This document shows positions 5,790 to 53,210 of a DNA stretch of 64,000 bases, piece by piece (the stretch's first letter is position 1; each line of letters starts with the position of its first letter). The DNA is from Mobula hypostoma (Eukaryota), in the NCBI RefSeq assembly GCF_963921235.1, contig NC_086124.1, positions 23,002,001-23,066,000 on the forward strand. Reading direction: 5' to 3'. The notes beneath the pieces are model-generated. The model was not told where the DNA came from, made no database searches, and saw only the letters and a program-made list of their open reading frames with translations. The position numbers and the translations under genes were made by a program.

Positions 5790-8322
5790 ATGGTGAGCGC
5801 GCGCGTGGGAAATGTCGGGGGCGCGCGAGTGCGGTGCACCGGGAGCGGGAGCGGGGACCCGGGCAGTGAATGTATGCGGGAACGAGGAGGCGGAGTGAAC
5901 CCGGGGGAAATGGAAGTGCAAACTCTAGGAGGTCCGAAATGACCCGGCGATGGGAGGAGGAGAGCGCACCGAGAGAATGCACAGGAAAAGCAGGTCCGTG
6001 ATTCCCACGGAAACGGCTGCACTAGTGGCGAAGGGAAAGCAGAATGTGTATGAATTGCAGAGGTGGGTGGGACTGACCTTCATCGTTACAGCTTGGGACG
6101 CTCCATGGAGTTAATCCGGATTGGATAGAGTTTAGTGCGCGAATGGGGCGAGGGCGCTCAGGACAATGGCATCTGGAGATATGCTGGAATTATTATAGAA
6201 ATATCGGAGCAAACAGATCGGGAGCGCACTTCTGGAAAACAATTCCCTTGTGCCTTAATACCCAACCGTATGTTGCCCTCCCTGCAGCGTGAGTGCATCT
6301 CAGTCCACATCGGCCAGGCCGGGTGCCAGATCGGTAACGCTTGCTGGGAGCTGTACTGTCTGGAGCACGGCATCCAGCCGGATGGACAGATGCCGAGTGA
6401 CAAGACCATCGGAGGGGGCGACGACTCCTTCAACACCTTCTTCAGCGAGACGGGGGCGGGCAAGCACGTCCCGCGGGCCGTCTTCATCGACCTGGAGCCC
6501 ACCGTAGTGGGTAAGGCCAGCGGGCATTGAAGATTGATCTCGCGCTGATTTAACAGAGTCTGTGTTCAATTCGCCCGTTCTCTGCTTCCTCTCTCCCCAC
6601 ACAGATGAGGTCCGGACCGGCACCTACCGGCAGCTCTTCCACCCCGAGCAGCTCATCACGGGCAAGGAGGACGCGGCCAATAACTACGCGCGGGGCCACT
6701 GTTCCATCGGCAAGGAGATTGTGGACCTGGTCCTGGACCGCATCCGGAAGCTGGTACGTTACCTAGCGACTACCAATCACCTTCGGGCGCCCCATGCTCA
6801 CCTCTCCACTGTATCCCATACCGTATTCGTCTCTGAGTTCTGCTTCGCAATGCCAACTCACCGGCTGGTCCTGGATTCGGAATGTCGCAGCTCCCGCTTG
6901 CAGAGAAACTCATGGCGCAATCTCCCTCCGGACCGGGAACGGGCGGCATGTTCACCTATTTTACCTTTCTCCTTTCCTTTGAAGACACTCTCAAAACTCG
7001 GCCGCTCTTTAACCCGTTTCGCCTTTTCCATTCTGCAATTATCGGATATTTCACTTTATGTTCGCCCACACGGCAATTCCACGCCCATTACGTTCCTCTC
7101 GTCCCCACCCCGCTCAACCAGCTGTATATTCTCTGCCCGCAGGCGGACCAGTGCACGGGGCTGCAGGGGTTCCTCATTTTCCACAGCTTCGGGGGCGGCA
7201 CCGGCTCGGGCTTCACCTCCCTCCTCATGGAGAGACTCTCCGTCGATTATGGCAAGAAATCCAAGCTCGAGTTCGCCGTCTACCCGGCGCCCCAGATCTC
7301 CACCGCCGTGGTCGAGCCTTACAACTCGGTGCTGGTCACCCACTGCACCCTTGAGCACTCGGACTGCGCCTTCATGGTGGACAACGAGGCCATCTATGAC
7401 GTGTGTCGGCGGAACCTGGACATCGAGCGCCCCACTTACACCAACCTCAACCGTCTCATTGCGCAGTTGGTGTCGTCCATCACGGCGTCGCTGCGCTTCG
7501 ACGGCGCCCTCAACGTGGACCTGACCGAGTTCCAGACCAACCTGGTGCCCTACCCCCGCATCCACTTCCCGCTGGCCACCTACGCGCCCCTCATCTCGGC
7601 CGAGAAGGCTTACCACGAGCAGCTGTCCGTGTCCGAGATCACCAACGCCTGCTTCGAGCCGGCCAACCAGATGGTGAAGTGCGACCCCCGCCAGGGCAAG
7701 TACATGGCGTGCTGCATGCTGTACCGCGGAGACGTGGTGCCCAAGGACGTGAACGCTGCCATCGCCACTATCAAGACCAAGCGCTCCATCCAGTTCGTGG
7801 ACTGGTGTCCGACCGGCTTCAAGGTAAGACCCATCCGCGCCTGAATGCATTCCCCGCACGCAATTTTCTTCTGTCTGCCCTTGCAGTTTTCAACCGTCCC
7901 AGGGAAAGTCGGCTAGTTGTGTTGCCTTCACAAATAGGCAGGCACCAACTGAGCAGTGGGATATTATGAAGTGGAATTTGTTGGTTGGAATGAGGTTATA
8001 ATTGATGCAACTTTATCTCCCACAGGTGGGCATCAACTACCAGCCCCCGACCGTGGTGCCCGGCGGCGACCTGGCCAAGGTGCAGCGCGCCGTCTGCATG
8101 CTGAGCAACACCACCGCCATCTCCATGGCCTGGACCCGGCTGAACCTTAAGTTCGACAAGATGTACGCCAAGCGGGCCTTCGTCCACTGGTACGTGGGCG
8201 AGGGGCTGGAGGAGGGAGAGTTCCAAGACGCGAGGGAGGACATGGCCTCGCTGGAGAAAGATTATCAAGAGGTGGCGGTGGATTCCGCCGAGCTGGACAG
8301 AAGAGGGGAAGAGGAAGAATAA
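5790..8322 (+). CDS. TUBA: Alpha-tubulin gene B (type-1 isotype, 450 aa, 5 coding exons)
   Basis: Exons 5790-5792 (ATG only), 6288-6510, 6605-6753, 7143-7823, 8026-8322 (3/223/149/681/297 nt), all GT-AG. Reads MRECISVH..., K40 loop [15 protein letters not shown] signature, E254 present, ends [13 protein letters not shown]. Specific isotype name not assignable by eye. Confidence 0.96.
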
Positions 8323-8394
8323 GATTTAGTAATTTAGAAATTGAAGGTTTAATTATGTTCAATATATTGTTATATATAGTATCATACTTAAATT

Positions 8395-8400
8395 AATAAA
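8395..8400 (+). terminator. Poly(A) signal of gene B
   Basis: AATAAA ~70 nt after the stop, followed by GT/T-rich sequence. Confidence 0.65.
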
Positions 8401-50163: not shown

Positions 50164-50247
50164 GGTGCGTTCGAGATGCGCTGCGACAAATTCGCTGAAG
50201 CTGGGAGAGCAGAGAGAGAGAGAGAGAGAGATAGAAAGATAGAGATC

Positions 50248-53210
50248 ATGGTGAGTGTGTCCCGGGCCGAATTCACTAAGAGTTCTGGGGGCGCGTCCTC
50301 ACTGGTGGTGTGGAGTTCAGGCGGTGACTCCATTGGGTGAATCGGGTAGGCGGAAAGGAGGCACCATTCGGAGTAGGCGCTACGCGGGTCTACATGGGGA
50401 AGGATTGCGGACGGATCTGCCCTTAACTAGTGGTAACCTCAAGGAAATTATGTTCATTTTCCCCCAAAAATATACCTTATTCAGAAATATTACAAAATAA
50501 AGTTATTTACTAAAATAAGATTATGTCCATGGGACACATAGGCCTTCGCCCGCTGTTCTTTCTGAATAACCGGTTGTCCTCCCCGTCTCCCTATCTCCAC
50601 AGCGTGAGTGTATCTCAGTCCACATCGGGCAGGCCGGCGTTCAGCTGGGTAACGCTTGCTGGGAGCTGTACTGTCTGGAGCACGGCATCCAGCCGGATGG
50701 ACAGATGCCGAGTGACAAGACCATCGGAGGGGGCGACGATTCCTTCAACACCTTCTTCAGCGAGACAGGGGCGGGCAAGCACGTCCCCCGGGCTGTCTTC
50801 ATCGACCTGGAGCCCACCGTGGTCGGTAAGGGGGCGTAATAGTGCTGACATATAGAAACCTCAACGCGGTCTCCTCCCCTCTCCGTAAGACACCCTGCGG
50901 ATTGCAAAATAAACAAACAAACAAATAAATAAAGCGTGCTAATCCTCCCGTTCTGAAATCTTTGCCCCCCACACAGATGAGGTCCGGACCGGCACCTACC
51001 GGCAGCTCTTCCACCCCGAGCAACTCATCACGGGCAAGGAGGACGCGGCCAATAACTACGCGCGGGGCCACTGTTCCATCGGCAAGGAGATCGTGGACCT
51101 GGTCCTGGATCGCCTCCGGAAGCTGGTAGGTTGTGGACAGGTGCCCGTCAGCGAATTGTAAACGTTTCCAGTTGGCCAGTGTTGAACCCATCCACACCTG
51201 TCCCACTATCCTCTCCCATTCCGAACAGAGAACGGCACAGTACCTCACGCTCACACCTCTTTCCCCGCAGGCGGACCAGTGCACGGGGCTGCAGGGGTTC
51301 CTCATCTTCCACAGCTTCGGGGGCGGCACCGGCTCGGGCTTCACCTCCCTCCTCATGGAGAGACTCTCCGTCGATTACGGCAAGAAATCCAAGCTGGAAT
51401 TCTCCGTCTACCCGGCGCCCCAGATCTCCACCGCCGTGGTCGAGCCTTACAACTCGGTGCTGGTCACCCACTGCACCCTCGAGCACTCGGACTGCTCCTT
51501 CATGTTGGACAACGAGGCCATCTACGACATCTGCCGGCGGAACCTGGACATTGAGCGACCCACCTACACCAACCTCAACCGCCTGCTGGGTCAGGTGGTG
51601 TCGTCCGTCACCGCTTCGCTGCGCTTCGATGGCGCCCTCAACGTGGACCTTCTGGAGTTCCAGACCAACCTGGTGCCCTACCCCCGCATCCACTTCCCGC
51701 TGGTGACCTACGCGCCCCTCATCTCGGCCGAGAAGGCTTACCACGAGCAGCTGTCCGTGGCTGAGATCACCAACGCCTGCTTCGAGCCGGCCAACCAGAT
51801 GTTGAAGTGCGACCCACGCCAGGGCAAGTACATGGCGTGCTGCATGCTGTACCGCGGAGACGTGGTGCCCAAGGACGTGAACGCTGCCATAGCCACCATC
51901 AAGACCAAGCGCTCCATCCAGTTCGTGGACTGGTGTCCGACCGGCTTCAAGGTGAGTGGAGGCTTTGAGACCAGTCCGGAGAACCCTCGTTACGGGGCCC
52001 TCACCCAAACCGGTACTCTCACGAGACATGGGATCCCCGCAAGGGCCAGAGATGTTTCTGCTCGAATCCGTAACCATTCCTGCCTAGCTCTGATAGACTA
52101 AGTAGATCTTTTAGGAGCGCCCCGTCTATCTGAATTGCGTAGCCGCAGACTCCCCTCTTAAATCTATTTTTCTAGACAGTGGCCACTTTATTGCGAACCT
52201 TCTGATCTTTCAGCTTTCGGCTTCGAAAACCCAGGTTGCCAAAGTTTAAAATAAATTTATTTTCCAAGTACCAAATAAAGTGGCCACTGAGTGTACGTTC
52301 ATGGTCTGCCGCTCACTAGATAATTTTTCTTTGTTGTTTGTTTTGCACGCCATTCTCTGTAAATTCTGGAGATATTGTGCGTGAAAGTCCCAGGAGATCA
52401 GCAATTTCTGAAATAGCCAAACTAACCCGTCTTGCACCAACAATCATTCCACGGTCAAAGTCACTTAGATCACATTTCTTCCCCATTCTGATGTTTGGTC
52501 TGAACAACAACTGAACCTCATGGCCACCTCTGCATGCTTTTTACGCATTGAGTTACTGCCACGTGATTGGCTGATCAGACATTTGCATTAATGGGCATGT
52601 GTACCTAATAAAAGGGCCATTGAGTATATATTCGGTTCATCGAGTTCATGCTAGCTCTTCTCTCGATCCAGTTTCCCTTCCATTTAACAATCTCTAAATC
52701 TGTCACCGCTTGCATGCCTTGTCCAGCGGCCAGTTAATTCTACATCACGTATTAGGGCGCGAAGCTAAGGAAGCAGGGGGCGCACGGTGGGGATCCAACA
52801 TGGGCCTCTTGTCTCTGGTTGTATCCCCAGTGCTCCGCCTAGTGGCCGCCGGCGCCTCTCCTCTTGAAGCAGTTTCTCTGCGTAACCGAGCTGCATTCTG
52901 TCCTGTCCCACAGGTCGGCATCAACTACCAGCCCCCAACCGTGGTGCCCGGCGGTGACCTGGCCAAGGTGCAGCGCGCCGTCTGCATGCTGAGCAACACC
53001 ACCGCTGTGGCCATGGCCTGGACCCGCATGAACATGAAGTTCGACAAGATGTACGCCAAGCGGGCCTTCGTCCACTGGTACGTGGGCGAGGGGCTGGAGG
53101 AGGGGGAGTTCCAGGATGCACGGGAGGACATGGCCTCGCTGGAGAAGGACTACGAGGAGGTTGGCATCGATTCGGCAGATCTGGACAAGAGGGCCGAGGA
53201 GGAAGATTGA
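50248..53210 (+). CDS. TUBA: Alpha-tubulin gene F (type-2 isotype, 450 aa; inverted duplicate of E)
   Basis: Exons 50248-50250 ATG, 50603-50825, 50977-51125, 51271-51951, 52914-53210; GT-AG introns; one visible amino-acid difference from E (DRLRKL vs DRIRKL). Confidence 0.96.
52177..52628 (-). mobile_element. Tc1-like transposon remnant in intron 4 of gene F
   Basis: Mirror of 35203-35655; ORF 52316-52510. Confidence 0.78.

Follow-up and report, generated by a model that had tools for sequence, protein, structure and literature searches.

Few eukaryotic protein surfaces are as well conserved as the outer face that helices H11 and H12 form on alpha-tubulin, since it is read by every motor and microtubule-associated protein (MAP). 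Most alpha isotypes also have an acidic tail ending in Tyr, a typical feature that is not required for family membership; encoded departures from the -EEY ending are known, with TUBA4A lacking the terminal Tyr and TUBA8 ending in Phe. Another specialised isotype is class VI beta-tubulin (TUBB1 or chicken beta-6), the beta-tubulin of platelet and erythrocyte marginal bands. Several partner contacts on alpha-tubulin have been assigned to individual residues or helices: tau contacts D392, H393, L397, S419, E420 and A427 (PMC10032563), the VASH1 interfaces involve H11, H12 and Y108 (PMC7449697), the CAMSAP CKK domain makes a contact near H393 (PMC6868217), the CH domain of SPEF1 contacts E386, E433 and H309 (PMC11642885), and kinesin N255 contacts the backbone of M413 (PMC4383081). 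Here we describe a cluster of alpha-tubulin genes in a 64,000-nucleotide stretch of the Mobula hypostoma genome (contig NC_086124.1, referred to as the window), which probably comprises four functional genes of two subtypes, belonging to an ancient isotype class restricted to elasmobranchs.

The cluster extends from the start codon of gene A to the stop codon of gene D (5790-53210), and splicing and translation gave four intact ORFs of 450 amino acids each, in agreement with the several intact copies of the original prediction. The genes fall into two types, each forming an inverted pair, and in all splice models exon 1 consists of the ATG only and every junction is canonical GT/AG. Type 1 comprises gene A (5790-8322, + strand; ATG 5790-5792, exons 6288-6510, 6605-6753, 7143-7823 and 8026-8322), identified by splice model, phmmer and Pfam, and gene B (18843-21173, - strand; ATG at 21171, exons 20690-20468, 20317-20169, 20022-19342 and 19139-18843), identified by splice model; their proteins are identical. 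Type 2 comprises gene C (34620-37621, - strand; ATG at 37619, exons 37227-37005, 36853-36705, 36559-35879 and 34916-34620; splice model) and gene D (50248-53210, + strand; ATG at 50248, exons 50603-50825, 50977-51125, 51271-51951 and 52914-53210; splice model and Pfam), with proteins that are one amino acid apart (I122L). A blastn comparison of the window with itself placed genes C and D in the left (30960-39094) and right (48802-57075) arms of an inverted duplication, with an identity of 92-97% overall and 97.1% across the genic part. Gene B is a chimera that has a type-1 promoter, exons and introns 1 and 4 together with type-2-like introns 2 and 3, the latter sharing 88.7% and 95.2% identity with gene C versus 33% and 19% with gene A. 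ALAS2 adjoins the cluster.

Comparison with skate type-1 genes delineated the type-1 promoter of gene A (5608-5789, + strand), which contains two CCAAT boxes, an AACGTTC element and a TATAAA at 5730. This region is approximately 71% identical to a Rhinoraja sequence (L004:9306-9526), with the CCAAT and AACGTTC blocks being invariant and the TATA region being without base-for-base conservation. The conservation of these TATA/CCAAT promoters with skates holds type by type.

Exons 2, 4 and 5 match the Pfam families PF00091 (Tubulin) and PF03953 (Tubulin_C) above the gathering scores, and phmmer comparison with alpha-tubulin chains in the PDB gave E values of 8e-150 for exon 4 and 4e-49 for exon 5. 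As originally predicted, alignment to the canonical consensus revealed that the GTP motifs (GGGTGSG, T1 GQAG and T3 NN), D251/E254 (T7-H8), the K40 loop and the MREC N-terminus are intact in both types, as are the M-loop and the longitudinal-contact motifs, a combination that fits a polymerisation-competent class. Type 2 carries T253L beside the catalytic E254 (...DLLEFQTN). None of the 32 clade rows described below ends in Tyr, and the tails of the window genes contain RR or KR.

Substitutions were read from the alignment to solved TUBA1B/1C chains and the canonical consensus. All changes listed beforehand were recovered in all four genes, namely, Y108C, T109S, T190V, T193C, H309Q, E386M, D392N, L397K, M413L, S419Q and E420D, with residue 393 being Leu in type 1 and Met in type 2, and further shared changes were identified (I115V, V177I, I188V, L317M, A389T and A427S). 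The claim that these positions are near-invariant elsewhere was confirmed: Y108, I188, T190, A385, E386, L397, M413, E420 and A427 are the same in all 21 canonical rows, which range from cnidarian to bird, and the H11 string AIAEAWARLDHKFDL was unchanged in 157 of the 232 proteins retrieved first. H309Q and D392N are not confined to the clade (Q309 is present in a bird alpha-5 and N392 in several canonical proteins). The 19 clade-diagnostic sites lie mostly in H3/H5, H11, H12 and the tail; among the 18 body sites used for the clustering test, 10 fall within residues 381-437 (H11/H12; p=1.3e-5) and 6 belong to the published tau-contact list (p=9.5e-4). The changes are thus not scattered at random, the non-conservative ones being concentrated on H11/H12. 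With surface exposure judged from helical periodicity and the residue lists in the cited papers, the diagnostic sites coincide with the contacts for tau, VASH1, CAMSAP-CKK, SPEF1 and kinesin, which supports the remodelled outer surface that had been proposed. The changes T109S, I115V, I188V, T190V and T193C in H3/H5 may concern core packing rather than the surface.

A clade signature can be defined as C108, S109, V190, C193, a hydrophobic non-Glu residue at 386, an aliphatic residue at 393, K397, L413, Q419, D420 and S427, together with a Tyr-less tail containing a basic residue; all four window genes carry every one of these features. The signature was present in 41 retrieved proteins, which represent no fewer than 12 species of sharks, skates and sawfish, including the batoids Amblyraja, Leucoraja, Rhinoraja and Pristis and the sharks Chiloscyllium (2 species), Carcharodon, Cetorhinus, Heterodontus, Heptranchias, Scyliorhinus torazame and Rhincodon, and was found in none of the retrieved proteins from outside the elasmobranchs. 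Sharks and batoids hence share the class, which has been amplified in several genomes, and the names of its members are all automatic ones, such as "tubulin alpha chain-like." Among the matches of 94 to 798 amino acids, every signature protein came from genome annotation and none from transcript-type sources (Logan and ENA), although these sources yielded many canonical alpha-tubulins, which weakly suggests low or narrow expression. In a tree containing 32 of the 41 proteins, window genes included, these formed a 100/100 clade apart from canonical alpha-1/4/5 and TUBAL3-like proteins, with window type 2 grouping with skate type 2 (100/99) and window type 1 being the sister of skate type 1 (84/79). 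Within the clade, V190, C193 and Q419 are 100% conserved and K397, L413 and D420 are 97% conserved; Glu does not occur at residue 386, and only aliphatic residues occur at 393. Because the new residues are themselves conserved (91-100% overall), constraint appears to have shifted rather than relaxed.

As judged from sequence, the four genes are functional and under strong purifying selection: genes A and B are separated by 29 changes, all of them synonymous (dN=0, dS=0.099), genes C and D differ by 15 nucleotides (omega of 0.02), and gene C and its Amblyraja orthologue (P0095) give an omega of 0.038 at a dS of 0.45. Dead members are frequent in large gene families, and the window itself holds two, so that the copies might be viewed as neutral or decaying duplicates with odd residues arising from relaxed constraint. 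One of the two is a truncated type-2 pseudogene recognised by sequence comparison (2415-4199, - strand), which retains exon 3 (4199-4051), exon 4 (3904-3224) and a damaged, frameshifted exon 5 (approximately 2704-2415) with 6-bp and 1-bp deletions and carries G144S (GGGTGSG to GGSTGSG), G246R, T257I and P298A; exons 1 and 2 are absent, and exon-2 peptides sought upstream were not found. The other is a decayed orphan copy of exon 5 with its flank (17892-18435, - strand), with approximately 84% identity to genes A and B and a broken frame. However, the pseudogene, with an omega of 0.25-0.31, provides an internal control that genes A to D do not resemble, and the complete absence of replacement changes between genes A and B, the low type-2 omega values out to the skate orthologue, the conserved derived residues and the conserved promoters together make decay highly improbable. 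It is even harder to believe that the copy number is an assembly artefact in which haplotypes or collapsed repeats were joined as inverted duplicates. The C and D arms are near-identical inverted repeats of approximately 8 kb, but they are 3-8% apart, indels included, and their first introns measure 389 nt (C) and 352 nt (D). In addition, genes A and B share only approximately 72-77% identity in the promoter and intron 1 and have quite unlike introns 2 and 3, and in an independent skate assembly, members of this family are likewise arranged in tandem and dispersed arrays.

Some members of the clade are named "alpha-8 chain-like," "alpha-1D-like" or "alpha-3-like" by NCBI, and the missing terminal Tyr is shared with TUBA4A, but it is very unlikely that they are orthologues of a divergent isotype that has already been characterised (TUBA8, TUBAL3, TUBA4A or TUBA3). 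Bird TBA4A and alpha-5 and the sauropsid "tubulin alpha chain-like 3" group (P0174 cluster) fall outside the 100/100 clade, are canonical at residues 108, 190, 386, 393, 397, 413, 419 and 420 and have a canonical H11/H12 surface; the distinctness implied by the original prediction is thereby borne out relative to TUBAL3-like, TBA4A and alpha-5 proteins, in a tree whose TUBAL3-like rows are sauropsid and whose TBA4A and alpha-5 rows are from birds. The weak sister group (90/73), an elasmobranch cluster (P0216) named "alpha-1C-like," "alpha-1B-like" or "alpha-3-like," has 15 listed members from 15 shark and ray species, with at most one per species among those listed. It shares V115, I177, M317, N392 and the tail motif ...AELDR... 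with the signature clade but keeps Y108, T109, T190, T193, E386, H393, L397, M413, S419, E420, A427 and a tail ending in -EEY. A less improbable but still unlikely explanation is that the substitutions serve mainly internal or biophysical needs, such as lattice stability, folding, temperature or a cytosol rich in urea and TMAO, and not partner binding. A large share of the changes are conservative exchanges among V, I, L and M in the core at H3, H5 and S8, T253L in type 2 could change GTPase activation, and the two new conserved cysteines, C108 and C193, suggest chemistry rather than docking. On the other hand, the standard alpha-tubulins of the same animals are fully canonical (for example, Cetorhinus P0102), so that the elasmobranch cytosol does not demand these substitutions, and where the changes are non-conservative they alter charge in the tail and on the solvent-facing side of H11/H12, at contacts named in cryo-EM and molecular dynamics studies.

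Our preferred reading remains that of a distinct isotype class with a changed outer surface. Its protein would pair with beta-tubulin and polymerise normally, given the intact interface motifs and the strong purifying selection, and would yield microtubules whose outer face is less acidic: E386M/L, D392N and L397K are expected to alter the H11 charge by roughly +3, and the tail gains Arg/Lys and goes from a net charge of -7 to -5. Lacking a terminal Tyr, the alpha tail should be unable to enter the detyrosination cycle, and VASH1 would meet altered residues on each of its three contact surfaces (H11, H12 and the Y108 patch). With both surface and tail changed, the binding of groove binders (CKK, CH-domain proteins and VASH) and of crest binders (tau-like MAPs) should change; the core kinesin contact at residue 413 may persist, since kinesin touches the backbone there and M413L need not alter motor binding. 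The class is likely to be used in a single cell type, for a microtubule array that is specialised and abundant. The originally proposed gamete or marginal-band setting, and dosage as the reason for several copies, are speculative. It is conceivable, although we put this forward only tentatively and think it rather doubtful, that the class represents a hard-wired state of the tubulin code, in which an amplified alpha-tubulin that can be neither tyrosinated nor detyrosinated builds one massive, MAP-poor, specially cross-linked elasmobranch array. Such a state may include the loss of acidic and His contacts for CKK, CH-domain proteins, VASH and crest MAPs, and the array may be the spermatid manchette or axoneme of the long helical sperm or, in view of the adjoining ALAS2 gene, the marginal band of erythrocytes or thrombocytes. 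The pair of new cysteines, C108 and C193, next to where H12 begins, might also provide a site for redox chemistry or cross-linking.

No description of this isotype class was found in the literature searched, and a set of generically named public elasmobranch gene models would form one coherent, unrecognised isotype. The class has swapped about 10 H11/H12 residues and the terminal Tyr and then kept the new state under purifying selection in sharks and rays, and the shark-batoid split at approximately 250-300 million years would date this retention. It offers a natural experiment for the tubulin code: the combination of E386M, D392N, H393L, L397K, S419Q and E420D with a partly basic tail that lacks Tyr can be used to find the motors, MAPs, end-binders and tail-modifying enzymes that tolerate it. 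Like class VI beta-tubulin, the class is a divergent, lineage-restricted isotype, and class VI is devoted to one specialised array; class VI is a beta subunit with known expression, whereas the window genes encode alpha subunits, and we take the analogy as a lead only. TUBA4A and TUBA8 resemble the signature clade in having non-canonical encoded C-termini but differ from it in their canonical H11/H12, and they are not known to be amplified or to have basic residues in the tail. With TUBA1A/1B/1C (3J8X, 4I4T and 1JFF), finally, the window proteins share approximately 90% identity over 450 amino acids, without indels to residue 437, and have in common the Pfam domains, GTP motifs, E254, K40 loop, MREC and ATG-only exon 1, but they are set apart by the 19 diagnostic substitutions and by a less acidic tail that contains Arg/Lys and lacks the terminal Tyr.

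Six-frame scanning and splice modelling recovered four complete alpha-tubulin genes in the window, each with an ATG-only exon 1 followed by exons of 223, 149, 681, and 297 nt, GT/AG at all junctions, and a product of 450 aa. Genes A (5790-8322, plus strand) and B (18843-21173, minus strand) are of type 1 and encode identical proteins; genes C (34620-37621, minus strand) and D (50248-53210, plus strand) are of type 2, with products that differ by one residue. The original prediction of several intact gene copies is thus borne out by the splice models. The proteins, which are ~90% identical to solved tubulins, were aligned to solved TUBA1B/1C chains and to a consensus from 11 canonical animal alpha-tubulins. 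All of the substitutions named in that prediction were present, and, as it had also stated, the GTP-site motif GGGTGSG, E254, the K40 loop, and MREC were unchanged, as were GQAG, the T3 motif, D251, and the M-loop. Both types additionally carry I115V, V177I, I188V, L317M, A389T, and A427S, which had not been listed previously. T253L, which adjoins the catalytic E254 (VDLLEFQTN), was found in type 2 only, namely, in genes C and D, the Amblyraja orthologue P0095, and the Leucoraja protein P0080, the two skate proteins having F255L as well. This change could tune GTPase activation at the longitudinal interface.

Coding-sequence comparisons indicate strong constraint on these genes. A and B are separated by 29 synonymous and 0 nonsynonymous changes (dS of 0.099), and omega was 0.02 for C versus D, 0.13 to 0.14 for type 1 versus type 2, and 0.038 at a dS of 0.45 for C versus its Amblyraja radiata orthologue (coding sequence from skate locus L001). 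A truncated type-2 pseudogene (2415-4199, minus strand), with an omega of 0.25 to 0.31 over exons 3 and 4, provides the local reference for relaxed constraint. We therefore regard genes A to D as functional. The type-2-derived pseudogene has no exons 1 and 2; its GTP-binding signature is damaged (G144S in GGGTGSG), it carries G246R, T257I, and P298A, and its exon 5 is frameshifted, with 6-bp and 1-bp deletions.

Relative to canonical alpha-tubulins, the window genes and their elasmobranch relatives (here referred to as the clade) differ at 19 positions: 108, 109, 115, 177, 188, 190, 193, 317, 385, 386, 389, 392, 393, 397, 413, 419, 420, 427, and 444. By sequence position, these changes are not scattered, in line with the proposed remodelling of the motor- and MAP-facing surface, as 10 of the 18 body positions fall within residues 381 to 437 (hypergeometric P = 1.3e-5). 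A helical wheel drawn from the sequence places 385, 386, 389, 392, 393, and 397 of H11 on one arc of ~140 degrees, opposite the conserved hydrophobic stripe I384, W388, L391, and F395. Within the clade, V190, C193, and Q419 are 100% conserved and K397, L413, and D420 are 97% conserved; residue 386 varies among M, L, V, and G and is never E, and residue 393 is aliphatic throughout. Such conservation of derived states indicates a shifted constraint and not a relaxed one. The two new cysteines were gained together (C108 in 96% and C193 in 100% of the clade), and their thiols may be close in space, since published work places Y108 and E196 in the same surface patch, next to E414 (PMC7449697).

Several of the changed residues are published partner contacts. 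The alpha-tubulin contacts listed for tau repeat R2 include D392, H393, L397, S419, E420, and A427 (PMC10032563), that is, 6 of the 18 clade sites (P = 9.5e-4). VASH1-SVBP contacts H12 through interface 1, H11 through interface 2, and Y108, E155, R156, V159, E196, and E414 of the neighbouring protofilament through interface 3 (PMC7449697, cited here for the H11, H12, and Y108 interfaces only). Furthermore, R1528 of the CAMSAP CKK domain reaches H393 (PMC6868217), and the SPEF1A CH domain has been modelled on E386, E433, D306, and H309 (PMC11642885), three of which are altered in type 1. The conserved N255 of kinesin forms a hydrogen bond with the backbone of M413 (PMC4383081), and because this is a backbone contact, M413L need not break it.

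In both types, the C-terminal tail has lost the terminal Tyr, contains two basic residues, and has a net charge of -5, versus -7 for canonical tails. These sequences are best read as an isotype class of alpha-tubulin that can still polymerise but is altered in two respects. Its outer face would be less acidic, by about +3 in H11 and +2 in the tail, and its tail would stand outside the tyrosination cycle, the terminal Tyr being gone clade-wide. Taken together with the changes to each of the three surfaces contacted by VASH1, the loss of this residue fits a release from, or avoidance of, the tyrosination machinery. It is of note that the VASH1-facing surfaces also serve many other partners.

Genes C and D lie in the arms of an ~8-kb inverted duplication (30960-39094 versus 57075-48802; 92 to 97% identity). 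Further nested inverted repeats (26006-31000, 39531-44151, and 57440-58433; 93 to 96% identity) flank this palindrome, so that the region comprises several inverted duplications in a complex arrangement rather than a single simple palindrome. Gene B is chimeric. Type-1 sequence makes up its coding region, its promoter, and its introns 1 and 4, whereas its introns 2 and 3 share 89 to 95% identity with gene C of type 2 and only 19 to 33% with gene A (gene B 19342-20690 compared with gene C 35879-37227). This mosaic suggests that the subtypes underwent gene conversion or unequal exchange that spared the protein. A decayed orphan exon 5 is located at 17892-18435. The intergenic DNA contains decayed reverse transcriptase fragments, including an RVT_1 fragment at 24604-24915 (minus strand); no other intergenic open reading frame had a Pfam match, and no Rfam family was found in the window. 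The spacers have the appearance of simple repeats and retroelements in decay.

Each of the four promoters contains two or three CCAAT boxes as well as a TATAAA box that precedes the ATG by 60 to 92 nt. Overall identity between window and skate promoters is ~70 to 75%, and conservation is type by type, extending to the CCAAT boxes and to a short element that precedes the TATA box by ~30 to 40 nt and reads GAACGTTC in type 2 but CAACGTTC in type 1. This element is invariant in the window and skate (L001 and the Rhinoraja locus L004) promoters, with window copies at 5710-5725, ~37700, and ~50165, and is reminiscent of a heat-shock-type element (two-unit GAAnnTTC). Scans of the promoters for GATA, X-box/RFX, CRE, MARE, and FOX motifs gave no tissue-diagnostic match; two AGATAG sites in the type-2 leaders both lie within a GA-rich tract. 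The beta-tubulin promoter module TGACRR-N13-CCAAT had 0 matches across the window. None of the 94- to 798-aa matches from transcript-type sources was a signature-bearing protein, a weak hint of restricted expression. [quoted passage not shown]

When exon 4 was the only query, a protein search could not tell the family apart from canonical tubulins (best identity, 95%), but its matches included two signature-bearing skate proteins, on the basis of which a C-terminal-region search with P0095 was done. Two such searches and a cluster look-up yielded 41 fetched proteins with the signature, that is, C108, S109, V190, C193, mostly Q309, L413, Q419, and D420, an H11 of the form A(I/V)xxAW(T)RxNxKFDK, and a Tyr-less tail with K or R. 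They come from Amblyraja radiata, Leucoraja erinacea, Rhinoraja longicauda, Pristis pectinata, Chiloscyllium plagiosum, C. punctatum, Carcharodon, Cetorhinus, Heterodontus, Heptranchias, Scyliorhinus torazame, and Rhincodon. P0260, a fragment of exon 5 from Pristiophorus, had a score similar to theirs but was not recovered by the signature scan. There was no 100% match to the window because the search shows one representative per 90% cluster. None of the signature-bearing proteins among those fetched came from outside the elasmobranchs, and none came from a chimaera. Amblyraja contributes 18 or more different models, spread over several chromosomes, some in tandem and some 10 Mb apart on the same chromosome. 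No ALAS2 was seen in the 10 kb on either side of four skate family members. An ampliconic sex-chromosome family was considered but dropped, as a preprint dealing with the sex chromosomes of sharks and rays makes no mention of tubulin, ALAS2, or amplicons. Many public models of the family (e.g., P0236 and P0233) are 415 aa long and begin at Met36. In L004, exon 2 is found directly upstream of the annotated start, as is a conserved promoter that comes with an ATG-only exon; hence, these NCBI models appear to be truncated by annotation. All signature proteins carry automatic names (e.g., "tubulin alpha chain-like," "alpha-1D-like," or "alpha-8-like"), and a literature search found no paper describing the class.

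In an IQ-TREE phylogeny of 54 rows and 450 columns, from which curated mammalian TUBA8 and TUBAL3 were left out, a 100/100 branch separated all 32 signature rows from the others. Among these others were canonical alpha-1-like proteins from cnidarians to teleosts and sharks, bird TBA4A and alpha-5, a lamprey protein, and a sauropsid "tubulin alpha chain-like 3" cluster. Within the clade, window and skate type 2 grouped at 100/99, window type 1 was sister to skate type 1 (84/79), and a more divergent subgroup was common to sharks and a sawfish. The tree suggests that the window is nearest to skates, at a dS of ~0.45. It follows from the groupings within the clade that the class, along with some of its subtypes, is older than the crown elasmobranchs. 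Taken together, these sequences describe what is plainly an alpha-tubulin, yet one that belongs to an undescribed, ancient, and amplified isotype class, with a partner-binding surface predicted to be rewritten. Its weak sister group (90/73) is a separate elasmobranch isotype, the P0216 cluster, which has V115, I177, M317, and N392 in common with the clade, as well as the tail motif AELDR, but retains the canonical H11 and H12 and a tail ending in -EEY.
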